Positions 39,061 to 53,619 of a stretch of 64,000 nt of DNA are shown here, in pieces. Under the pieces are notes generated by a model. The model did not search any database. It had not been told where the DNA came from and was given only the letters and a program-made list of their open reading frames with translations. The position numbers and the translations under genes are program-made. Each line of letters starts with the position of its first letter. The stretch's first letter is position 1. The stretch is taken from the sequence record PV764603.1. One strand, given 5' to 3'.

Positions 39061-40002
39061 ATGCCTGTATCTAATCCACCTACCTTGTTGAGTGTCATTG
39101 CAGAGTTCGGAGGCCCTAACAATCTTGGGGCCTATTACCGCAAAGGTCCATACGTACCTGACGGTCCTCCGCAGAATGCCAACATCAGTGATACGCCGGG
39201 CGGTCTTCGTCTCAGTCAGTTTGCGGGTGCGGTCAAGTACAATCTCAGTGCGTCCCTGAATCGCACGACCGCCAACACCAGTGGTAGTGGCAACAGCCAG
39301 TCGGGACGTGTCCTAACTCCACAGCTGATTGTTTACCCCGTTAACGGCAGCGGCAACTACAGCTACTACTGGAACTACACCGCAGGCGTCCCTGTTAGCG
39401 GAAATACCAGTAGTACGTTCCAGCTGTACGCTGATCTCAACAATGGTCAGAACATTTCTGGCAACGGTAACTGCGTGGTTACCGATAACGTCACTGGTCA
39501 GAATGCGATCCCTAGCTTTACGTTCTACCTAAGCTGGACGTATGAACGCCCACCCACCTGTGTTGTCATGGAAGCATACCTGCACGATGGAAAGCAGGCA
39601 GGCATGTACAACTCCAACGATCCTCTGCTGTTGGTCGATCCATACGCAAGGACTTCGGAGACGCTGAACATCGTAGATGCGCAGACCTTCACCCGAGAGT
39701 GTGTGACCTTGGTTACTGCCAATGGCTCACGCCTAACGTGCTCCACCACTGCACCTATTCCAGTCAAAGCCGACTCGGAAACGCTGGTTCGTGCGGTGGA
39801 TGCTCTAGGCCACCACGTTGCTACTACCACACGCCCTAACGACGTGATCCCATCGGTCACTTGGGATAAGGTAGTGCGTGTGCTGCCTGCTGGTGAGCGT
39901 GCTGTCCGCAATATCTACATCTACGACAAGTGCTTCTGGGCTTCGGATGACAATCGTTCGTTCATCCTCCATCACAACACGACTGGTAAGCAGATCATAT
40001 GA
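39061..40002 (+). CDS. short fibre-like virion protein with C-terminal Hint domain
   Basis: N-terminal module shared with 40615; Hint from CVVME (39559) to ILHHN (39978) followed by TTGKQII. Confidence 0.75.
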   Translation: MPVSNPPTLLSVIAEFGGPNNLGAYYRKGPYVPDGPPQNANISDTPGGLRLSQFAGAVKYNLSASLNRTTANTSGSGNSQSGRVLTPQLIVYPVNGSGNYSYYWNYTAGVPVSGNTSSTFQLYADLNNGQNISGNGNCVVTDNVTGQNAIPSFTFYLSWTYERPPTCVVMEAYLHDGKQAGMYNSNDPLLLVDPYARTSETLNIVDAQTFTRECVTLVTANGSRLTCSTTAPIPVKADSETLVRAVDALGHHVATTTRPNDVIPSVTWDKVVRVLPAGERAVRNIYIYDKCFWASDDNRSFILHHNTTGKQII

Positions 40003-40604
40003 TCGTCAACAAAGAACCACGCACCGCTACTCCGATGAATTGGTTGCCTACGTACTACCTCAGTCGGATGTTTAACGCAGAAGAGTGCGCCACCATCATC
40101 AAGGAGTCAGAGGACTCCGGACTGTTTGTGCAAGGCCGCACCATTGGCGACAATAACGTGACTGTAACAGAGCAAGGCCGTCAGGTGGCCATTATCCGAC
40201 TGGCTGGAGGTACGCTGTACGAAATGATGCGCCAACGGATACTGGAACGGCTGCCTGACCTAAACTCCTGCTATCAGTTTGAACTGTTCGGCGCAGATGA
40301 AGTCTTCAAGGAAATCCATATCCTGAAGTACGTGGAAGGTAATTTCCACGGTGAACATTTGGACCTCGCCGGTTACGAGGAAATGTGCAACCGGAAGCTC
40401 AGCCTCATCGTCCAGTTGAATCCGGATTACGAGGGCGGTGAATTAGTCCTCTACAACTCTTACCCCGAGAAACCTCTGACCAATAGCAAGCAGGCTGGCG
40501 ACGCAGTGGTATTCCCCGCATGGATGCCGCACGAAGTAAGACCTGTTGACTACGGGACTAGGTACGTTCTTGTGGTTTGGTTGCGAGGCCCTAAATTTAG
40601 ATAG
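39999..40604 (+). CDS. 2OG-Fe(II) oxygenase (prolyl 4-hydroxylase/PKHD-like)
   Basis: LKYVEGNFHGEHLD (HxD), RKLSLIVQLN, YEGGEL, GDAVVFPAWMPHEVRPV..GTRYVLVVW. Confidence 0.93.
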   Translation: MIVNKEPRTATPMNWLPTYYLSRMFNAEECATIIKESEDSGLFVQGRTIGDNNVTVTEQGRQVAIIRLAGGTLYEMMRQRILERLPDLNSCYQFELFGADEVFKEIHILKYVEGNFHGEHLDLAGYEEMCNRKLSLIVQLNPDYEGGELVLYNSYPEKPLTNSKQAGDAVVFPAWMPHEVRPVDYGTRYVLVVWLRGPKFR

Positions 40605-40614
40605 GGAGGTACTC

Positions 40615-41202
40615 ATGGCCGTATCAAACCCACCAACACTGGTGAGCGTGCGTAACGAATTCGGTGGCAACGGAAATCTCCGTGCCTACACACGAGGCGG
40701 TGGCCTTGTTCCAGATGGGCCTGCGCAGAATGCGAACATCAGCAAAACTCCGGACGGTTTGCGGCTTAGTCAATTTGCAGGAGCAACTAAAATCACTGCA
40801 CAGTTGACCGACATTTATGCGCAGCAGTCCTACTACGGACAATCGGGTCAAGACAACACTGCTTCTGCCACCATCCAGTTTAGTACCGATGGCAACATCT
40901 ACTACACATGGGGTATGGGAGCTTTGCAGACGTACCGATGGTTGGCTGGCGGTAATGCAAGTGATTTTGACGTAGAAGGATTTAATCAGCAGATCGCAGG
41001 TAACGGTCAAACCTCGGGCACGATGAATCGTCAGAATTTGGGTGGTTCTCCCCGATGGTCATGTTCCGCTGCAACCCGATTTGGTTTTGTTGATTCTTCC
41101 ATGTCATTTGGCTGCCGAATCTACCAAGCGGGTACTGGTAACGTTATCGCTACAGCGAATTTCAGTATTTATGCCGCCGCCTCAGATGGTAGCATCGGAT
41201 AG
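40615..41202 (+). CDS. short fibre-like virion protein, paralogue of 39061 N-terminus
   Basis: 44 of the first 59 aa identical to the 39061 protein; Gly/Asn/Ser-rich beta body. Confidence 0.75.
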   Translation: MAVSNPPTLVSVRNEFGGNGNLRAYTRGGGLVPDGPAQNANISKTPDGLRLSQFAGATKITAQLTDIYAQQSYYGQSGQDNTASATIQFSTDGNIYYTWGMGALQTYRWLAGGNASDFDVEGFNQQIAGNGQTSGTMNRQNLGGSPRWSCSAATRFGFVDSSMSFGCRIYQAGTGNVIATANFSIYAAASDGSIG

Positions 41203-41257
41203 CAACTCCATCTTCTAGTAACAACCAAAACGTTTGACACAACAAGGGAGAAGAAAC

Positions 41258-41935
41258 ATGTTCCAAGAAAGGGACCAAACTACAGCCAAATGGAATCCCC
41301 TCTGCCACGAACAGGTCAACTTGATTAACTCTTCGCTGATCGCGCGCCTCAAGGCGAAGGCAGATGAGTATCCGGTTAACCCTTACGGTTGTGGATGGGA
41401 TAGTGGCGTTCCACTGGACCTGACTGCACCGACGGCCAGTGACGCGTCGCCAGAAGCTGTGTTGATTCACGATACCCGAACGCTCATCGCAGAATGCGTC
41501 CATCGCCTATCGGGCTTCTATCCATTCGATTTGTATTTCAAGGATGCGGCCTTTGTTGTTCCTGCACCGCAACCTGCTTCGGTACGCTTGGTGCGACTCG
41601 CTATGGGTGCGAAGCTTAATCCGCCCCACGCTGGTACGGCGGTTGCTCCCGGCGCCACGAATCGCATTGATCTGAATACGCATAGTCAGGCTCATCAGAA
41701 GATTCATATGATGATCCCGCTCTCTGCTTACGAAGGTAACGACGTGTTCTTCCCCTTCTTCGATCCGAACTTGCAGGAATGGAAAGACGTGTCGCCCACC
41801 ATCACTAACGCACGGGCTGACTGGACAGGCATCACGTTGTCATGGCCTGCGTGGCGGTTGTGTAGGTTCAGTCCCGTCGAGGACGGCGAAGCCTACCTCC
41901 TGCTAGTCACGTTGTACGGACCTCGCTTCCAGTAA
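41258..41935 (+). CDS. putative Asp/Asn beta-hydroxylase-like (DSBH) protein
   Basis: VRLVRLAMGAKLNPPH...KIHMMIPL resembles the R.L.pG..I.PH...R.H.PL pattern of that family; second iron ligand unclear. Confidence 0.45.
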   Translation: MFQERDQTTAKWNPLCHEQVNLINSSLIARLKAKADEYPVNPYGCGWDSGVPLDLTAPTASDASPEAVLIHDTRTLIAECVHRLSGFYPFDLYFKDAAFVVPAPQPASVRLVRLAMGAKLNPPHAGTAVAPGATNRIDLNTHSQAHQKIHMMIPLSAYEGNDVFFPFFDPNLQEWKDVSPTITNARADWTGITLSWPAWRLCRFSPVEDGEAYLLLVTLYGPRFQ

Positions 41936-44307: not shown

Positions 44308-45923
44308 TGACTATCTATAACGGCGATGATCCGAATACCTTGTTGCCTAATGCTTCATCCATCAACCCACTAATCACCTACGGCTTCCATCAAGTCTATG
44401 GCAAGATGGACGGGAATGGCGTTGTTGTGGATACGATGGGCATCATGCTGCCAGAAGGTTTCCGTGATCTTGACGTGTGGCGAGACTTCGCTGATAGCGT
44501 CGATGAGGTGATGAACAGCGAGATTGCAACGCAGATCGAAAGCCTGATGAGCACGAACGACCCGTATGCGTCTTCGGTGAATCCTGCTATTGACCGCCGT
44601 ACCCTCCTGTACCTCATTGGTGCAATCGGATTCAAGTACAAGCAAAACGACGTGTTTGACATTGATGATTTGAAGCGGTTCGTTCGTCATACTCCGCAAT
44701 TTTGGGGTGAGAAGGGCAACCGCTTCTTCATTCAGTACATGAGCTATGTCGTTAACGCCCAGCTTCAAATGCAATACCTGTGGACGCAGGACTACAAGGT
44801 GTTCGTCCCCGAGGGTAGTCCGCTGATTGGTCGCCCTGTATGGGAGTCCGCAGTAAATGCCACTGCCAACGTGGTCCCATTCGGTACAGGCGATGGTGCT
44901 CAGACTGTGTTCCCCCTGATGGTGATGAACTCCACCATCGACAGCGTTTCGGGAACCCCTACGATCTACCGCGTTGACTGGGCAGGGCAAACGCGCCTAT
45001 ACAACACGCCACGCACCAACCGCATTAGGCGTAGTGTTGAAATCGGTAGTTCTGCTTGGTACAACGATAATCCCACCAACCTGATTGTGCAGACCACTTC
45101 GGCGTCGGCACCTGACGGTAGCGCGACTGCCAGCGTGCTCAAACCTATGACTACCGGCGCTAACGCAGGCTCGCTTCTTGATGGTAGCGCAGTGACGCCC
45201 GGCCCTGTGACCTGTAGCGTTTATCAATCCTCCGAGGGATTGACCGCAGGACAGAAGGTTCGGTACGCTCTGTGGAGTGTGGACTCAAGCAACGTTATCA
45301 GTCTAGTGGGCCAAACGGATTTGGAATGGACGGGCACTCAGATGCGCGTGGCCGCATACAGTGGTCTTGCCTCCAGTGTCCTGCAATCCTTGGGTGATGG
45401 TTGGTATCGCATTGAGTACACGGGTACGACTGGCGTTGGTGCTCGACTCTCTATCCAGCCCGGCCTAACCCACACCAATCCTGTTACGGTGTGGGGCGCT
45501 CAGTTGGAGCAGGGTAGCTCTGCGACTCGCCTCATCAAGACCTACGGCGTTGAAGTAACCACCACGGATTTCGCCTTTACCAACAATAATCGGAGTATCA
45601 CCCTGTCTTCGCCGCTCCCCGTTGGCGCGAGCCTCAGCTGGAGCGGAACGTACAATCAGGCAGGCACTTGGTATCCAACAAGTCACGTATACATCGTCTA
45701 CGACGTTGATAAGTTCCGAGGCTCAGTCTCGAATAATTTCAATAGTCAAGACAGCTTGGCTGCATTTTTCTACACCATCGCTCCAATTGAACTGGTAATC
45801 CAGTCCTTCGTGCTCAACGTCAACTTTGATCCTACGGTTCTACAGTTGGCAGGTGACGTGCAGATTAGCGTATATACGCCGATGGAAGTGGAAGCTATTA
45901 CTCCGATGAACACTAGGGCTTGA
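44307..45923 (+). CDS. baseplate wedge / tail protein (gp7-like) with carbohydrate-binding-like insertion
   Basis: FWGEKGN..FIQYMSY; inserted RTNRIRRS...GDGWYRI...VWGAQLEQGS jelly-roll-type module. Confidence 0.7.
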   Translation: MTIYNGDDPNTLLPNASSINPLITYGFHQVYGKMDGNGVVVDTMGIMLPEGFRDLDVWRDFADSVDEVMNSEIATQIESLMSTNDPYASSVNPAIDRRTLLYLIGAIGFKYKQNDVFDIDDLKRFVRHTPQFWGEKGNRFFIQYMSYVVNAQLQMQYLWTQDYKVFVPEGSPLIGRPVWESAVNATANVVPFGTGDGAQTVFPLMVMNSTIDSVSGTPTIYRVDWAGQTRLYNTPRTNRIRRSVEIGSSAWYNDNPTNLIVQTTSASAPDGSATASVLKPMTTGANAGSLLDGSAVTPGPVTCSVYQSSEGLTAGQKVRYALWSVDSSNVISLVGQTDLEWTGTQMRVAAYSGLASSVLQSLGDGWYRIEYTGTTGVGARLSIQPGLTHTNPVTVWGAQLEQGSSATRLIKTYGVEVTTTDFAFTNNNRSITLSSPLPVGASLSWSGTYNQAGTWYPTSHVYIVYDVDKFRGSVSNNFNSQDSLAAFFYTIAPIELVIQSFVLNVNFDPTVLQLAGDVQISVYTPMEVEAITPMNTRA

Positions 45924-47068
45924 CCATGACCCAACTTTACATCACTGAGGCAGGCATCGCTGCTGCCAACTCGTCCAGTCCTAACGGACCTATGATCCAA
46001 ATCGTGTCGTTCGCCCTAGGCAGCGATTACGGATACACCCCTCCACCGTCCTCCGTGTACCCGGGCGCCAACAGCGTCGTTACTTCGCAGAGTGCGCTAC
46101 GCGGCACGGTACGCTATCCAGTTGGTACTCAGCGTGCCGTACCCAGTAACTACCACCTCGCCGCTGATGGTATCACAGGCGTGTTCACGCTAGTGGTAGG
46201 TCTGGACGTGGGCGACTTCTCGTTTGGTGAAGTCGCACTCTACATGCCCGGCAACGTCATGTTCGGTATTGCAGTTCTTCCTCAACTGCAAACCAAACTG
46301 ACTACCACACAGAGTCAGACGGGCAACATCATCAACATGACGGTCAGCTTCCAGCTGAACGGTGTCAAGCCCAACATCACTGTGCAGAATGTCACGACCG
46401 CACTGGCTGATATTCGCACGGTCGGTACCGTTGACGTGATGAGTCCCCCTTCGGCCAGCCCTACCAACAACGCCATTTCTTTGCAGGTTGATGAATACAA
46501 CCGCAGCAACTTGATGACGAAGCGTGACACCGACCTGTGGCAGTCCCAGCAGTATGACTGGATTGTACATGAAGGTGTTGTGCAGGTATCGGGCGACAAG
46601 ACTCTGAGTGATGCGACTCTGGCTACGTCGCCTATCTACGTTGCACCGGGCCGCTACATTCTGCAATTCACCAGTGGTGCGTTGAAAGGTCAGGTTCGCC
46701 AAATCACAGCCTTCCCTGTGTGGGCTGCAAGTGTGGTTCGTCGCGTGGGTGACGTTATTCAGCCTACCAACAATCCCAACGTCCTACTTAGGTGTACTAC
46801 CGCTGGCACTTCGGGTACTGCACAGCCAACGTGGAACACTGGCACTTCGGGTGCCACCACTACGGATGGCACGGCGGTGTGGACGTATACGCCCAACAGG
46901 GATTCTCCGAATACCACGCTTTCGTGGGCGGGCTCTACCTCTTCCAATGCGCTGAACGGCGTTACCTACGCTGTGTACCGTGCCGCATCTTTCAGTGGCA
47001 TTCGTCAGTACATCGGCGAATACATGCTAGACGCAATGCCCATCAACTATTACAACCAACACCACTGA
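45920..47068 (+). CDS. tail-collar fibre protein (DUF3751-like) with CBM5/12-like module
   Basis: LYITEAGIAAA, GDFSFGEVALY; WAASVVRRVGD...RCTTAGTSG..QPTW...DGTAVW. Confidence 0.8.
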   Translation: MTMTQLYITEAGIAAANSSSPNGPMIQIVSFALGSDYGYTPPPSSVYPGANSVVTSQSALRGTVRYPVGTQRAVPSNYHLAADGITGVFTLVVGLDVGDFSFGEVALYMPGNVMFGIAVLPQLQTKLTTTQSQTGNIINMTVSFQLNGVKPNITVQNVTTALADIRTVGTVDVMSPPSASPTNNAISLQVDEYNRSNLMTKRDTDLWQSQQYDWIVHEGVVQVSGDKTLSDATLATSPIYVAPGRYILQFTSGALKGQVRQITAFPVWAASVVRRVGDVIQPTNNPNVLLRCTTAGTSGTAQPTWNTGTSGATTTDGTAVWTYTPNRDSPNTTLSWAGSTSSNALNGVTYAVYRAASFSGIRQYIGEYMLDAMPINYYNQHH

Positions 47069-47080
47069 GGATTTCCCAAC

Positions 47081-47428
47081 ATGGCTTTCACTCCTTCCTC
47101 CGGCGTCCTCGGTCAGATCAGGCCCTCAGGCGCAACTGAGACTGTTCTCTACACTTGCCCTGCTGATGCACGTGCCTCTGTCAGCATTACCTGCTGCAAC
47201 ACGGATAGCGGCTCTACCACTGTAACGGTCAAGGTGAGGTCAGGTTCCACGTCCACTGCTCTTGTGAGCGGTGCTCAGTTGGCACCCGCAGGTGAACAGG
47301 GACACTCAATCGACATTCGTGCTCTGATTCTTGGGCCGGGCCAGTCGGTAGCAGTCACTAGCTTCAGTGGTACTGTAGATTTCAGCGCAATCGGGTACAC
47401 GGCGCCTTCCAACGTCGTTGCGTTCTAA
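47081..47428 (+). CDS. small virion structural protein
   Basis: ETVLYTCP...SITCCN beta-sandwich pattern among fibre genes. Confidence 0.65.
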   Translation: MAFTPSSGVLGQIRPSGATETVLYTCPADARASVSITCCNTDSGSTTVTVKVRSGSTSTALVSGAQLAPAGEQGHSIDIRALILGPGQSVAVTSFSGTVDFSAIGYTAPSNVVAF

Positions 47429-47438
47429 GAGGTGACCG

Positions 47439-49724
47439 ATGATTACCCATCAGGATACACTGTTCTCCAACATCCTATACGGAAATAATTGGAGTGCAGC
47501 TACCTACCAAGCCGCAAATCGGTTCACCATCCAAGGTGACAAGCGAACTTCGTATGAGGTAGGTACCCAGGTTCAGATTCTCACGTCCGCCGTAGCTACC
47601 ATGCAGTACAGCTACGTCAGTGCAGTCACATTCGCATCCAACGTCACTACGGTGACAGTCAGCGACGGCCTGTTCGCCTCGGGTCAGAAGATCAATGTTC
47701 GTGCGTCGCCGTTTGGCGCCAACAACATGCCCCTCGGCCGACGCTTCAAAGAAATCAGCGTGTTCGGTGCGAACGGTCTAACGATCTCGAATGCGAGTCC
47801 GAAGTTCACCTTGTTCGTGGAGGGCGTTGGCGCAGGCAAAGTCAACACGTTCACTTTCCAGCCGGGCTCTGACGGTATCTCGTTCAAGGTGGGACGTGAT
47901 GCGATTGGTCTCGATGCCATGCGCATCGACGCCACTTCGACTGCCATCACCAAGGTGACGTTGTTCTCGCCCCTGACCTTTGGCGCGACGTATACGGGCG
48001 CCCTGACTTCGCTGACCGACCTTCTGACGATTGGTCAATACGCACTGACCTATTCGGCTACGGGTTCTTCGACCGGCAGCAATCGTCTGTATATCTCCGG
48101 CCCTAATGGCGGCGAGTTCACCGTTGGTCCTACCAACGATGCTCAGGTATTCCGTCGTATTCGACTGCGTGCTACTGACGTTGTGGTCGAGAACAATCCC
48201 GGCGGTTCCTCGCAAGCAGGCTCGATCTGGCATAGCCTCAACTTCGATCCTGACACCCGTGTTACCAAGGGTCAGAATGGTTCTTGGATGGATTCGGCTT
48301 ACACTGCGATCAACAACCTTAACAACGCTCAGGGGTATTTCAACCAGTGGGCATCGGGCGCCGCACAGGCTCCTGTTGCAGGTTCGACGGGTGTTGTGCA
48401 AACCATGCACAGTGCGGGTGGCAACAACTTTAACCCTGTGGCTGGTGCTTCGCTGGTGCAGACGGCTTATGTCACCAATGGCACCGCACCTGCCCTGTAT
48501 GTGCGACGCAACGTAGGTGCTTCGGGTTGGTCTGCATGGACTAAGCTGTATACCCAAGCAGATTTCTCGCTTGGCGATTACGTCAAGATCGCAGGCGGTG
48601 ATACCATCCAGTCCCCGATCACTGTACGTACTGCCTTGTCCGTTGGCACGACTGCGGATGCAACGTCCACCCTGAACTTCGGTACCTCGGCCAGTCCCAA
48701 CGGTCCTGCTGCTACCATTTCTGTTACGGGCGGCGCAGCGACCACGGGTCGTGGTGCAATGACTATCAACGCGCAGTCCATCGCGCTGCCTGCACTGAAC
48801 GTCAACGGTACGATGAACGTTTCGGGCGCTGCTTCGATGGCGGGCCCACTGACCATCACTACTGGCTCCATACTGCTGGGTAACGGCACGTATGGGGAAT
48901 CGCGTATTAGCAATACCTTCGACGACTGGTATTTGTATTCCAGTCCTACGGGACTTGGCTGGTACAGTATCAGTAAGGGTAGTGCTTTCTCACTGGACAA
49001 GAACAGCAAGGCGTTCACGTTCAATGGTGCGGGTACCATCAACGGTCAGACTACCATCAATGGTGGTCTGAACGTGGCGAGCGGTAGCGGCATCATCACT
49101 TCGGGTAACGTTGTTGGCGCTAACGGCAACTTCTCCAATGACGTGTTTGCCCCGGGTGCTTTCCGTGGCGCTCGCCTGCACATCTATGCAAACTGTATTG
49201 CCTATGGCCAGGGTTTCCTCCCTAGTTGGAACGACTACGGTGATGGCGCAACGGTCCTGACTAACGCACGCGGCGGTGGTACGGGCGGCTTCAAGTTCCG
49301 TCAGATGAACAGTGATGGCGGTGGTCAGGTCTTCCTTGCCTTCATCAACCCGAACGGTACCATCGGTTCGGCGTCGGACGAACGCATGAAGGAATTCGGT
49401 AAGGTACTCGACCTGTCTGACGCTCTTCGGTTCATCCGTGAGCAGCGAGTCAAGCACGTCAAGTGGAAGCACACCGGCGAGGAGGATATTGCGTTTGGTG
49501 CGCAGAGCATCTTCAAGACCACTAGATTCCTAGCCCACTACGACAAGGGTGCTGACTTCTGGCAGCTGTACTACCCGAAGGTAGCTCTGTACCATCACGA
49601 AGCTCTCTTCCATATCCTTGAAGTGCAGAACAATCACGAAGCCGACATTCAGATTCTGATTCGCAAGAACGAAAATCTGGAAGAGGAAGTGAAGCAGCTG
49701 CGCGAACGGTTGGATTCTCTCTAA
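47439..49724 (+). CDS. long tail fibre with knob domain and C-terminal intramolecular chaperone (peptidase S74)
   Basis: SASDERMKE cleavage motif, IAFGAQ, terminal coiled coil LEEEVKQLRERL; knob-like LYVRRN..GWSAW. Confidence 0.9.
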   Translation: MITHQDTLFSNILYGNNWSAATYQAANRFTIQGDKRTSYEVGTQVQILTSAVATMQYSYVSAVTFASNVTTVTVSDGLFASGQKINVRASPFGANNMPLGRRFKEISVFGANGLTISNASPKFTLFVEGVGAGKVNTFTFQPGSDGISFKVGRDAIGLDAMRIDATSTAITKVTLFSPLTFGATYTGALTSLTDLLTIGQYALTYSATGSSTGSNRLYISGPNGGEFTVGPTNDAQVFRRIRLRATDVVVENNPGGSSQAGSIWHSLNFDPDTRVTKGQNGSWMDSAYTAINNLNNAQGYFNQWASGAAQAPVAGSTGVVQTMHSAGGNNFNPVAGASLVQTAYVTNGTAPALYVRRNVGASGWSAWTKLYTQADFSLGDYVKIAGGDTIQSPITVRTALSVGTTADATSTLNFGTSASPNGPAATISVTGGAATTGRGAMTINAQSIALPALNVNGTMNVSGAASMAGPLTITTGSILLGNGTYGESRISNTFDDWYLYSSPTGLGWYSISKGSAFSLDKNSKAFTFNGAGTINGQTTINGGLNVASGSGIITSGNVVGANGNFSNDVFAPGAFRGARLHIYANCIAYGQGFLPSWNDYGDGATVLTNARGGGTGGFKFRQMNSDGGGQVFLAFINPNGTIGSASDERMKEFGKVLDLSDALRFIREQRVKHVKWKHTGEEDIAFGAQSIFKTTRFLAHYDKGADFWQLYYPKVALYHHEALFHILEVQNNHEADIQILIRKNENLEEEVKQLRERLDSL

Positions 49725-49766
49725 GGACATTGGGCACAGGGACGTGCTCCTTTTTAGGTAGAGGCT

Positions 49767-51158
49767 ATGTGGATCACCCCTCAGAATCAAACTCTTGATG
49801 ACACGTTCGATCCATACTTTCCGGGTACAACTCGGTGGTATGGTTACACCGGCATCCTCATCAACAACACGCAAGACACCTACGATCGGTACGCTCCTTT
49901 GCAGTATGGCAGGCAAGCTCCATCCACGGCGATCCTTGCGCAGAATCAGGTAGACCTGAATCAGATTTACGCAGCCCGAGGTACAGCAGGCTACCTGCAA
50001 GGTATCTCTATCCCAAATTGCTACGTGGGCTGCTCTGGCGTTACCATCAACGATCTTCTCGCTGCTCGATGCACCATCATCATCAAGAACGACGGTACGT
50101 GGCAGCAGTGGTTCTATTCCACCAACTACAAGACGGATAGCCCGGGTGCATATGCACCTCCTAATCGTGGCATCCCTCGAACCGAAACCAACTTCAGCAA
50201 CGGACGCATGAACGCCGCCGGTAACTGGGCACAGATTCCGTTCGCTGGTGTGGGTAACAACTACGAGACTTTCTGCCACGCTCCTTGGGCCCCATACGAA
50301 AGCAAGAACCCACCTGATCTAGATTGGGGTACTGCCGATCACTATAATCGGTATGATGCTGCACTCATCAACTATATCTGGCACAACTTTAAGGGCCAAG
50401 GACAGTTCGGTAGTGCTAGTGATCCATACGTGGTGCAGAACACTACACAGAACCCCAACGAAGACATTCCTGACGGTCGGGTATACCGCATCGACCGCGA
50501 CATTCGGTTCACCCTTGGCTTGACTGCACAGGGACGCAACAACGTTCGTTGGAACTACGACGACAACGGCGCTCTGTCATGGTACAACCGAGCCAACTTT
50601 TCGGTGTACATTCAGACACCCGGTGGTGGTCAGCGTGTAGGTGCCACGTGCTTGATGGCCAATGAGATTCGATGGAACGCATGGAATTGGACGGGTGGTA
50701 GCGTCGGCGGCGGTGGTGGCGGTGGTGGCGGTGGTTGCGTTGCTGCTACCAGCTATGTTGACTTCCAAAAGACCGCAGGCACTGTTGAGGCAGGCGACTA
50801 CCTCATGGGTATGACGGATGATCTGCAATTTATGGAGCTACACGTCCTGAGTGTGCGTCGTCAAGTGCAACCGTGTGTCCGACTCTACTCAAAGAGTGGC
50901 GTCACCCTTGTGTGCTCAAAGTCCACGCCGCTGACCCTACAGAACGGAGATTGCGTGCTGGCAGGCGAAGCACGAGCAGGTATCAAGCTTCCGGTACGAT
51001 TCTTCGCGGCTGATCCTGAGTGGGAAACCATCGTCAAGATCGAGGAGGTTGGCAACCGGGAAGTGATGCTCATCAACTGCGGTGGACAGAGCTATGCTGC
51101 CGGTGAGTTGCCGGGCCGCTATATCTACACCCACAACAACAACCAGCAGAAGATGTGA
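49767..51158 (+). CDS. fibre-tip/adhesin-like protein with Gly10 linker and C-terminal Hint domain
   Basis: Trp/Tyr/Asn-rich body; G10 then CVAATS (50736) ... YIYTHN (51137). Confidence 0.8.
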   Translation: MWITPQNQTLDDTFDPYFPGTTRWYGYTGILINNTQDTYDRYAPLQYGRQAPSTAILAQNQVDLNQIYAARGTAGYLQGISIPNCYVGCSGVTINDLLAARCTIIIKNDGTWQQWFYSTNYKTDSPGAYAPPNRGIPRTETNFSNGRMNAAGNWAQIPFAGVGNNYETFCHAPWAPYESKNPPDLDWGTADHYNRYDAALINYIWHNFKGQGQFGSASDPYVVQNTTQNPNEDIPDGRVYRIDRDIRFTLGLTAQGRNNVRWNYDDNGALSWYNRANFSVYIQTPGGGQRVGATCLMANEIRWNAWNWTGGSVGGGGGGGGGGCVAATSYVDFQKTAGTVEAGDYLMGMTDDLQFMELHVLSVRRQVQPCVRLYSKSGVTLVCSKSTPLTLQNGDCVLAGEARAGIKLPVRFFAADPEWETIVKIEEVGNREVMLINCGGQSYAAGELPGRYIYTHNNNQQKM

Positions 51159-51577
51159 TGATTGGTTCTGACCAACTCTCAGAAGTAGGTGTACCTGTCG
51201 GAGAGCTCTCCATTGGGAGGACTCTCGACGTATATGCGGTGGACGATCTACACTCGGTCATCCGCCTGAAAGGAACCGTCTCAAATCGGGTCCTGCGCAG
51301 TGCAGAAGTAGTAACCATCACAACTGCCTCCGGCGCTTCCGTTGTGGTGGCTGCCCAAAGTCGCCTCCCTGTCTATAGCGGACAGACAGCGCTGGCTAAG
51401 AATGTTGGTGCCAACATGATTGCTGTGATGGCCCCTAATGGCGCTTTTCGGTGGGAGCGGGTTGCCACCATCGAGGCTGGTACTGAGGCCGTAGTGGACC
51501 TCAAGTGTGAAGGCTACATAGTAGCCGGTAACGATCCTAAAACCGGGCTAATCTTGGTGTCTGGATCGCTGCCGTGA
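51155..51577 (+). CDS. stand-alone degenerate Hint-like protein
   Basis: Hint-like blocks (VGELSIG, VVTITTASGASVVVAAQSRLP, WERVATIE, VVDLKCE.YIVAG) but no N-terminal Cys/Ser and no terminal HN. Confidence 0.55.
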   Translation: MMIGSDQLSEVGVPVGELSIGRTLDVYAVDDLHSVIRLKGTVSNRVLRSAEVVTITTASGASVVVAAQSRLPVYSGQTALAKNVGANMIAVMAPNGAFRWERVATIEAGTEAVVDLKCEGYIVAGNDPKTGLILVSGSLP

Positions 51578-51656
51578 CAGTCAATTTTACGTAAGGACAT
51601 AAGGCTACGGATAGCAGCCTCACATAAAGACACTTCCCAACAAATAAGGAACGATC

Positions 51657-52334
51657 ATGCAACTCCAGGTTCTTCTCTCCTCTGTCGAAGCTCTCAAGTA
51701 CGTTGCCGGCCTGCGGCTGCCTGCTGTCAAGGCGTTCAAGGTCAGTTCATACCTGCAACGTGCTCAGGTCCATATTGACGCATGGCAGGCAACTGGCCGG
51801 ACTCTGGCCCAGCGCCACTACGGCGAAGACCAGCAGCCGCTGTCTCCCGAAGACGCCGTACAGTTCAAGGCAGCCACTGACGAAGTGCTTGCTTCGGACG
51901 TCGAAGTCGATACCGTCAAGCTCCTGAGCTACCCGGCAGACTTCAAGGAGGAAAGTTTCATCCCCCTGAATATGGCCATCCTGTCTGAGCACTTTGTTGA
52001 CGTTACCAAGCCCGAAGCTACTGGCGTCACCAAGATTAGTCGGGGTAAGCTGATTGGCGCTTACATGTCTCTTCAACAGTTGGGTCAGCAGGAACTGCCG
52101 AAGGCTGTTGGTGAGAATCTGCTGTTCAACCTGATGACGGTCCGAGACCTACTGAATTCGTTCTCGGAGCGCGACGTTGAACTGACTAAGCAGGGCGATG
52201 CGAAGGCTCTGGAGGAATATCGTTCCGAGGAAGTGGAGGTCAACTTCTATCCCATCAACATCAATGCGTTTGGCGATGTTGAAGTGGCTCCGGCACTTCT
52301 CGTAGATGCCGCGTGGCTCATCACTGAGGAATGA
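51657..52334 (+). CDS. tail-fibre assembly-type protein with two tandem helical repeats (DUF1617-like)
   Basis: Two roughly 110-aa units, each ending EVEV(D/N)...P..(M/L)..L. Confidence 0.55.
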   Translation: MQLQVLLSSVEALKYVAGLRLPAVKAFKVSSYLQRAQVHIDAWQATGRTLAQRHYGEDQQPLSPEDAVQFKAATDEVLASDVEVDTVKLLSYPADFKEESFIPLNMAILSEHFVDVTKPEATGVTKISRGKLIGAYMSLQQLGQQELPKAVGENLLFNLMTVRDLLNSFSERDVELTKQGDAKALEEYRSEEVEVNFYPININAFGDVEVAPALLVDAAWLITEE

Positions 52335-52337
52335 TTC

Positions 52338-52883
52338 ATGGCTGAGTTTGACATTGCCTATAGGCAGCAGAACATCGAGTCGGATTTGATTGATGATCCT
52401 ACTGATCCTGGGGCTGTGACAAACTATGGTTGGAACCTTGGCTCCCTCCGCTTGGTGGGAGTCGAGGCCGACTACGAATTCGTCAAGAGTATGACGGCGG
52501 CAACTGCCAAGGAATTATACCGTCAGTATTTCTGGCATCCACTTTGGACCGAACTCAAATGTCAGCAGGCGGCAAACAAGCTGTTTACCCTCGCTGTGAC
52601 AACGTGCGCACCCAACAATTTCAACTTGGCCACTCGCTGTTTGCAGAGGGCCTTGTGGGCATCGGGCGCTTACGTGCATGAGGATGGAAAGCTTACAGAG
52701 GATGTAATAAGCGCAGCTAACGCCGTTGAGTGTTCGGCCCTAAGCTCTGCCATGCGTAGTGAAATGGCTTCCTACTACAGGACGCTTAACGCGGAGTATG
52801 AACTGAGGGTCAAGTACAAGCTGCCTGTAGTGGTCCCCGTGAATCGTTACATTCGCGTGTGGCTTCACAACTCCTATCGCTGA
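52338..52883 (+). CDS. GH108-family lysozyme-like protein (divergent)
   Basis: DDPTDPGAVTNYG, AKELYRQYFW; canonical EGGY replaced by ESDL. Confidence 0.75.
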   Translation: MAEFDIAYRQQNIESDLIDDPTDPGAVTNYGWNLGSLRLVGVEADYEFVKSMTAATAKELYRQYFWHPLWTELKCQQAANKLFTLAVTTCAPNNFNLATRCLQRALWASGAYVHEDGKLTEDVISAANAVECSALSSAMRSEMASYYRTLNAEYELRVKYKLPVVVPVNRYIRVWLHNSYR

Positions 52884-52893
52884 AGAGGATGGC

Positions 52894-53619
52894 ATGACCA
52901 TGAGCACGGAAACCGTTCTGATCGGTCTTGGCTGTCTACCTGATAACGCTCAAGCCCTTGAGGGGGCGTGCATTCGGTACGGCATCGAGACTACGTGGCA
53001 CAAGTCCATTTTCATCGGACAGATCGCTGTAGAAACAGGTGGCTTCCGTGCCACCCGCGAAAGCATGAATTACAGCGTTGAAGGTCTTATCAATGGTTTT
53101 GGCCGTCACCGTATCAGTGTGGCGGACGCTCAGAAATACGGGCGTATTGATAAGGTCGTGAACGGCAAGAAAACTGTTATCCGAGCAGCTAACCAAGTAG
53201 CCATCGCCAACATCCTGTACGGCGGTGAGTGGGGACGCAAGAATTTGGGTAATACCGAGTTGAACGACGGATGGAATTTCAGGGGCGGCGGTGACAAGCA
53301 ATTGACTGGCCGCGCTAATTGGACCAACTACAGCATGGACACCTATGGTGACTTGCGTGTGCTGGAGAATCCTACTCTGATCGAACTCTATCCCGACAAG
53401 AGCTACACTGCTGGTTGGTTCTGGCAACGCAACAAGCTGGGTGACATTGCTTCGCAATATGTGCTCCCTGATGATCCCAAATCTCCGGAGTACGATTCCA
53501 TCCTGCGTTCTACTGTTACGGTAGTTACCAAGAAGGTCAACGGCGGTGACAAGGGTTTGGAGGATCGCATCATGTGGACGAAAAAGGCCCTGCAAGGCTT
53601 CAATCAACTCGTACTGTGA
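52894..53619 (+). CDS. GH19-family endolysin
   Basis: FIGQIAVETGGF, ESMNYS, FRGGGDKQLTGRANW, AGWFW, VTKKVNGG..GLEDR. Confidence 0.93.
   Translation: MTMSTETVLIGLGCLPDNAQALEGACIRYGIETTWHKSIFIGQIAVETGGFRATRESMNYSVEGLINGFGRHRISVADAQKYGRIDKVVNGKKTVIRAANQVAIANILYGGEWGRKNLGNTELNDGWNFRGGGDKQLTGRANWTNYSMDTYGDLRVLENPTLIELYPDKSYTAGWFWQRNKLGDIASQYVLPDDPKSPEYDSILRSTVTVVTKKVNGGDKGLEDRIMWTKKALQGFNQLVL

Follow-up and report, generated by a model that had tools for sequence, protein, structure and literature searches.

How a Hint domain might be used at the extreme C-terminus of a phage tail protein, where only a short peptide follows it, is the question raised by two adjacent open reading frames (ORFs) in a 64,000-nucleotide (nt) stretch of sequence record PV764603.1, the whole of which is termed the window below. 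Over bases 47000-53000 the window matches Xanthomonas phage PhiXhv-16 (PV764603.1), a jumbo myovirus of 229 kb whose host is X. hortorum pv. vitians, at 100% identity, and phages PhiXhv-12, PhiXhv-15, Ep026 and Ep032 at 96.6-99.7%. ORF A (XYR93579.1; 463 amino acids (aa); 49767-51158, plus strand) and ORF B (XYR93580.1; 139 aa; 51158-51577, plus strand) are located in the tail/baseplate module of this phage, and both are annotated in GenBank as "hypothetical protein"; reading them requires no alternative genetic code. The reading put forward here, to which a probability of about 0.6 is assigned, is that ORF A is a tail-fibre-module protein with a C-terminal Hint domain of the bacterial intein-like (BIL) type, which would perform autoprocessing in cis at Gly323|Cys324 rather than splicing, and that ORF B is a catalytically dead paralogue with an accessory role.

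ORF A displays four consecutive segments, all encoded on the plus strand: an N-terminal part (residues 1-313; 49767-50705), a linker of ten glycines (Gly314-Gly323; 50706-50735), a Hint domain of 134 residues (Cys324-Asn457; 50736-51137) and a C-terminal tail with the sequence NNQQKM (51138-51155). In the AlphaFold2 (AF2) model of ORF A, computed from an eight-row alignment, residues 322-457 present block means of the predicted local distance difference test (pLDDT) of 66-92, while residues 1-321 are poorly modelled, with pLDDT values below 50 in the N-terminal part and of ~30 in the linker. A Foldseek search of the PDB with the Hint model revealed 49 matches at E ≤ 1e-3, all of them inteins, BIL domains or Hedgehog proteins. 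They include the gp41-1 intein, which is the best match (PDB code 6riz; E of 6e-7 and TM-score for the target (TMt) of 0.83), the NpuDnaB intein (PDB code 4o1r; E of 7.7e-7 and TMt of 0.76), the BIL domain of C. thermocellum (PDB code 2lwy; E of 3.8e-6 and TMt of 0.78), BIL2 of Tetrahymena BUBL (PDB code 6y75; E of 8.9e-6 and TMt of 0.69) and Hedgehog (PDB code 1at0; E of 1.5e-5 and TMt of 0.76). Because every one of these matches is a Hint protein, the predicted fold of the C-terminal 134 residues of ORF A is regarded as settled, and as a genuine Hint fold. The gp41-1 intein also ranks first when PDB sequences are searched with phmmer (E of 0.025) and reaches an E of 0.0024 with hmmsearch and a seven-sequence profile.

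The two ends of the domain carry the features most relevant to its chemistry. At the N-terminal junction, ten glycine codons, a mixture of GGC and GGT (50706-50735), abut the TGC of Cys324 (50736-50738), as the initial annotation of this DNA had recorded. The linker is predicted to be disordered and is the sole glycine run longer than four residues in all six frames of the 64 kb window. Cys324, the nucleophile at the first position, is invariant in the clade, and in the wider family Ser replaces it in two distant relatives only, P0022 and P0027. At the C-terminal end the protein reads IYTHN-NNQQKM, with Asn457 at 51135-51137 and the stop codon TGA at 51156-51158; the terminal T/S/H-H-N is conserved in the family. 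The residue at position +1 is Asn, and its counterpart in relatives is N, M, A, L, V, S or T. Since this residue of ORF A is not a nucleophile, classical splicing is not expected, which upholds the view taken initially from the THN-NNQQKM end, and the variability of the position among relatives points the same way. Lys462, the penultimate residue of the tail, is invariant within the close clade; in the wider family, nearly every tail likewise contains a Lys. A feature that had escaped notice lies inside the domain, at intein block B. In the alignment to gp41-1, S384-K-S-T387 of ORF A, which is followed by Pro, falls on S-E-E-H, so that Thr387 takes the place of His and the Thr-x-x-His of the Hint superfamily is lacking. 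Thr387 belongs to a segment, S-x-S-T-P-L-T-L, in which it is invariant among all relatives.

Comparison with characterized members of the superfamily places the domain closest in its working to A-type BIL domains, from which it would differ in several respects. The two have in common the Hint fold, Cys1, a C-terminal His-Asn without a conserved nucleophile at +1, and a placement in variable, surface-type proteins; the chemistry expected of A-type BIL domains is reportedly autocleavage at both the N- and the C-terminal side, with no obligation to splice. In contrast with A-type BIL domains, which carry TxxH, ORF A has S-x-x-T, its cassette is located at the extreme C-terminus of phage tail or baseplate proteins, with a Lys-bearing tail of only 4-20 residues and oligo-glycine at the -1 junction, and its Hint has no sequence match in Pfam or the PDB stronger than E of about 1e-3. 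By analogy, the ORF A Hint may thus work like an A-type BIL domain within the Hint fold superfamily. The mini-inteins gp41-1 and DnaB are its best structural and sequence matches; unlike them, it is not inserted in a host protein and has neither Cys, Ser or Thr at +1 nor a functional C-extein, only six residues being left on that side, and it is therefore not a true intein. Hedgehog Hog/Hint resembles it in the Gly-Cys scissile junction and in being a C-terminal processing domain that releases a functional N-terminal part through a thioester. However, ORF A stops six residues past the HN and has no sterol-recognition region, its terminal HN is conserved, and it lacks TxxH.

The same cassette, comprising oligo-glycine, Hint and tail, is found on proteins that are otherwise unrelated. 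A word-based search identified two full-length orthologues of ORF A (57% and 50% identity) and five proteins whose N-terminal parts are entirely different and in which only the segment oligo-Gly-Cys ... THN-x3-5-[QE]K-x is shared. Searching isolated phages with tblastn added XacN1 ORF231 (Gly6), RTH11 (Gly19), LucasX (Gly14-D-T-G) and a 1824-aa "VrlC" protein of Stenotrophomonas phage DLP_6, with G4-R-G6. The left end of the DLP_6 record (about 57-1655) contains a further, unannotated ORF, at least 532 aa long, with the same Hint end (SAGS|CVT ... YSHN-VTKQIP) and without poly-Gly. Although the N-terminal parts of these relatives are unrelated, positions of catalytic type are invariant among them, namely poly-Gly-Cys-Val, S-x-S-T-P-L-T-L, YAAG[ED], T-H-N and the Lys of the tail. 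The cassette is C-terminal in every case, on carrier proteins of 283-1825 aa whose N-terminal parts include the Phage-tail_3/Rcc01698 (gpJ-like), DUF4815+PKD and VrlC types, all tail or baseplate proteins, and several of the genes directly precede a gp25-like baseplate gene. A scan of IMG/VR revealed 26 loci, in all of which the domain lies at the C-terminal end of an ORF of 395-1149 aa; most have Gly5-Gly14 before Cys-Val, often behind a Pro-rich linker, and tails of 4-31 residues, with Lys in nearly all. The tract is 5 to 20 residues long in most relatives with unrelated N-terminal parts, which supports its being a selected feature. Among 50,697 isolated phages the clade was found in nine records only, eight of which are Xanthomonas or Stenotrophomonas phages; the ninth is Ep032, near-identical to Xanthomonas phage Ep026 and deposited as an Erwinia phage. 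Between PhiXhv-16 and Ep026 the Hint presents 30 changed codons and one changed residue, and it is under strong purifying selection.

The N-terminal part had been described initially as Trp/Tyr-rich and adhesin-like. The compositional statement is borne out, Trp and Tyr amounting to 11.2% of the 313 residues, whereas among 45 long ORFs of the window the median is 3.9% and the highest value 9.1%. The likeness to adhesins found no counterpart: the sole match of this part, over residues 10-120, is phrog_11610, a family of unknown function that occurs immediately behind tail-fibre genes. An ESM Atlas search with the N-terminal part provided no lead, and a word-based homologue search returned nothing beyond three full-length orthologues.

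ORF B begins where ORF A ends. The two genes overlap, as noted at the outset, in ATGTGATG (51153-51160, plus strand), which contains the final sense codon and the stop of ORF A together with the ORF B start. The ATG at 51158, which is the start annotated in GenBank, shares one base with the stop, whereas an alternative GTG start at 51155 would give an overlap of 4 nt; the arrangement suggests that translation of the two genes is coupled at this site. Compared by BLASTP with the neighbouring Hint, ORF B gave a weak match (26% identity over 74 residues, E of 0.003). Profile comparison with hhalign was considerably stronger, with a probability of 95.6% (E of 1e-8) with small alignments and at 97.3% (E of 2.4e-11, 124 columns) with 6 versus 13 rows. 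In this alignment residue 2 of ORF B pairs with the Val that follows Cys1, leaving Met1 at the position of the nucleophile; ORF B orthologues end with GLILV(S/Q) at the position of T-H-N, and the block-B S-x-S-T-P motif is lost. The earlier description of the downstream gene as a Hint-like protein without Cys1 and HN is thus corroborated, and from its sequence ORF B appears to be a Hint derivative that spans exactly the Cys1-to-HN core without the catalytic positions. When the ORF B profile was run exhaustively with HMMER against 1.84 billion representatives, it retrieved only six proteins of 137-139 aa, followed by true C-terminal Hint cassettes, namely P0022 and P0027, the latter with Ser1 after G3-Y-G5. 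Conversely, the Hint profile finds three places only in the PhiXhv-16 genome: ORF A, a copy at 39559-40002, and ORF B (E of 1e-6). The named ESM-Atlas feature neighbours of ORF B all belong to Hint families, which is taken as a lead only. A word-based homologue search with ORF B returned ORF B itself, and tblastn against the 50,697 phage records found it in five near-identical phages only.

The initial annotation had proposed conservation of the gene pair in related phages as a check, and the outcome is divided. ORF B lies directly behind the ORF A orthologue in six of six diverged lineages and is intact in all of them; L006 is a duplicate of the L005 lineage with an alternative call. Five lineages have a stop/start overlap and the sixth has a start that is adjacent or overlapping; the overlap is 4 nt in L005, L012, L014 and L016 and 1 nt in the window and L004. 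In the same genome pairs, ORF B is 28-53% identical and the neighbouring Hint 49-70%, ORF B being the faster evolving of the two. The more distant homologues of ORF A in RTH11 and LucasX have the N-terminal part, poly-Gly and Hint, and the gene that comes next encodes, in place of ORF B, a DUF1353 "tail assembly chaperone". Taken together, the genes downstream of the cassette in RTH11, LucasX, XacN1, DLP_6 and the 26 IMG/VR loci encode the DUF1353 chaperone, gp25-like proteins, a 2-oxoglutarate (2OG) oxygenase and others, but not ORF B. Because other cassette loci have other downstream genes, ORF B is not a general partner; as judged from these comparisons, it is a lineage-specific, long-lived and catalytically dead paralogue that selection maintains in this phage lineage only, and no general component of the cassette. 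Its role is probably that of a non-catalytic accessory, either as an assembly or cap factor or as a structural component serving ORF A or the fibre. Two further explanations of ORF B were discarded. A decaying remnant is ruled out by its intactness in six lineages at 28-53% identity, and a -1 frameshift fusing ORF A to ORF B was dropped because no slippery site is present and because the length of the open stretch in front of the ORF B start ranges from 4 to 46 codons among lineages. As a separate observation, two IMG/VR contigs (L026 and L029) each contain two consecutive genes that are both Hint-terminated, and the ORF A/ORF B pair may plausibly have arisen from such a tandem.

Inteins, BIL domains and Hedgehog proteins provide the established Hint chemistry on which a mechanism can be modelled. 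Cys324 would attack the carbonyl of Gly323 in an N-S acyl shift, and the resulting Gly-thioester would then be resolved in cis, releasing the N-terminal part with an oligo-Gly C-terminus. Cyclisation of Asn457 probably also operates, possibly with aminolysis by the tail; it is suggested by the conservation of the HN and the Lys-bearing tail, which a pure N-cleaving domain of the Hedgehog type would not need. The outcome would be maturation or release of ORF A, not the splicing of two functional exteins. ORF B has lost precisely Cys1, S-x-S-T-P and THN, a contrast which argues that ORF A retains them because they serve catalysis. In this arrangement the Hint may fill on ORF A the role that an S74 self-cleaving chaperone domain has on the neighbouring fibre gene. 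Peptidase S74 chaperones of fibres and tailspikes occupy the same C-terminal position on tail fibre proteins and have the same presumed self-removal after assembly, although fold and chemistry are unrelated, a Ser-Lys dyad contrasting with the Cys and Asn of the Hint. The gene immediately upstream of ORF A, encoding a 761-aa fibre-like protein (47439-49724, plus strand), displays near its end an S-D-x-x-x-K motif typical of this chaperone; the window copy has no Pfam match, and its orthologue in L016 matches Peptidase_S74 (PF13884). With the S74 module on the fibre orthologue and the Hint on ORF A, adjacent tail genes would bear two different self-processing C-terminal modules.

Several observations weigh against this reading of ORF A and ORF B and define how far it can be pressed. 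Throughout the clade, Thr stands in place of the block-B His, on which the N-S acyl shift normally depends; activity of the Hint is therefore not guaranteed, and this is the main reason for caution. Pfam searches with ORF A and with the Hint alone (E ≤ 10) matched no Hint family (PF01079, PF07591 PT-HINT, PF13403 Hint_2 and PF14890), nor did those with ten relatives (E ≤ 0.01) or a Pfam scan of ORF B, and neither the Hint nor ORF B had a match in PHROGs. For ORF B, AF2 gave an all-beta model with a pLDDT of 41, too poor for a fold search, so that the Hint fold of ORF B rests on profile comparison. Poly-Gly is absent from the second copy in the window (39061-40002), the second DLP_6 copy and P0022, and one of the two patterns used in the IMG/VR scan was GGGGGCV, so that this survey over-counts poly-Gly members; among members found without that pattern, about seven of ten independent ones have the tract. 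No experimental or proteomic report was found for any member of the cassette, and no paper on Hint domains at the C-termini of phage tail proteins was found in the literature searched, in which the phiCbK and CBB papers concern terminase inteins and the XacN1, LucasX and PhiXhv papers and a jumbo-phage overview are silent on genes of the ORF A/ORF B type. Taken to its end, the loss of the block-B His would mean that the Hint performs no catalysis and stays in place as a structural or capping domain, with poly-Gly as a hinge only. Stand-alone and apparently non-catalytic phage Hint folds do exist, ORF B and the 143-144 aa Hint-fold proteins in BFVD among them. Nevertheless, an inert domain is judged improbable for ORF A, in which Cys/Ser1 and T-H-N are invariant and the block-B-equivalent S-x-S-T-P is strictly conserved, exactly the positions that the truly inert copy, ORF B, has lost.

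If the domain is active, the fate of the Gly323 thioester allows an alternative, in which it is attacked by an amine instead of being simply hydrolysed, giving an ATP-free, ubiquitin-like conjugation as reported for Tetrahymena BUBL BIL2. The amine could come from the conserved tail Lys, yielding an isopeptide-branched or aminolysis-spliced product, or from a Lys of another virion protein or of ORF B, yielding a covalent cross-link. Oligo-Gly followed by the Hint Cys mimics the arrangement of ubiquitin-like domain and BIL, BIL2 is among the structural matches (6y75, TMt of 0.69), the linker is long and flexible, and conservation extends to the HN and to a Lys within a very short tail but not to a +1 nucleophile. 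BUBL BIL2 (6y75/6tmm) has been described to form an isopeptide between a Lys epsilon-amine and the upstream C-terminus (PMC8616854), which is why thioester capture stays a rival. Like ORF A, BIL2 combines a Hint fold with a glycine-ended upstream domain, and its Lys isopeptide would give the tail Lys a role; it differs in lying between two ubiquitin-like domains and in having a block-B His (H69), whereas the C-terminal side of ORF A is a hexapeptide only. Capture is nevertheless considered unlikely. The acceptor would so far be a hypothetical one, the spacing from HN to Lys ranges from 2 to about 22 residues, a Lys in a tail of 6-20 residues is not improbable by chance (long-tail clades), and some members have no poly-Gly. 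Its most far-reaching form would make the cassette a phage-encoded, ATP-independent protein ligase in cis, in which the oligo-glycyl thioester of a tail protein is captured by a Lys amine as an isopeptide and ORF B is, in this lineage, a docking or acceptor module. The tail Lys, a neighbouring virion subunit, ORF B or a host surface amine may then supply the amine, and the covalent link may lock the fibre tip or baseplate, bringing ubiquitin/BUBL-like conjugation into virion assembly; this is a speculative proposal with a low chance of being correct. The model of the initial annotation, in which ORF B heterodimerises with the active ORF A Hint and sets the timing of cleavage, draws on the stop/start overlap that couples both genes, their co-occurrence over six lineages and the fold common to ORF B and the Hint in the hhalign comparison. 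However, complex prediction with the Hint (residues 300-463) and ORF B, each with its own alignment, gave an ipSAE of 0.00, which with controls not run speaks neither for nor against the model and lends it no positive support. The cassette does without ORF B in every other clade, and ORF B co-occurs equally with the N-terminal part of ORF A, which it could bind instead. Regulation of one complete Hint fold by another through dimerisation is not known, and the model is held to be rather unlikely.

In the gene order around ORF A, a baseplate protein is followed by a tail-collar-fibre-like protein (45920-47068), a 115-aa fibre-like protein, the 761-aa fibre, ORF A and ORF B, and then by a 225-aa ORF, a glycoside hydrolase of family GH108 with a second glycoside hydrolase, and spanins. 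In the lysis region of a relative (L004, 8881-9720) a gene of 279 aa has a weak Pfam match of ADP-ribosyl exotoxin type (PF03496), and no counterpart is present at that position in the window. The Hint and ORF B segment (50706-51577, 873 nt) presents 0 differences from PhiXhv-15, compared with 2.2-2.7% in the flanking genes; relative to Ep026, the Hint diverges by 6.6%, more than its flanks (1.2-3.7%). This mosaic divergence suggests a recent recombinational exchange of the segment between sister phages.

PhiXhv-16 encodes a second Hint-terminated tail-module protein (39061-40002, plus strand), with the Hint at 39559-40002, the junction PPT|CVV and the end LHHN-TTGKQII. Its stop is overlapped by 4 nt by the start of a 2OG-Fe(II) oxygenase gene (39999-40604, plus strand; PF13640, E of 2e-15), after which a paralogous fibre-like ORF without Hint (about 40612-41202) and another ORF (41234-41935) are found. 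In one metagenomic clade (L031, L033, L034 and L036-L041), a Hint-terminated protein with a Pro-rich linker, Gly6 and a VLHHN end is encoded directly upstream of a gp25-like baseplate wedge gene, and the cassette therefore serves proteins at baseplate or spike positions as well.

The C-terminal domains known so far to remove themselves from phage fibres are S74 chaperones with a Ser-Lys dyad, and a Hint equivalent on ORF A would be a second, chemically different solution to the same task. It would come from a Hint clade that is invisible to Pfam and that combines the lack of the "essential" block-B His with a conserved oligo-glycine junction and a tail Lys. The active and the dead copy, side by side in ORF A and ORF B, constitute a ready-made natural control for which residues matter, and the cassette would be a natural source of compact terminal tags, of about 134 aa, for cleavage or thioester generation. 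Should the thioester be captured and not hydrolysed, the cassette would be the first case of protein conjugation by a Hint in a virus.

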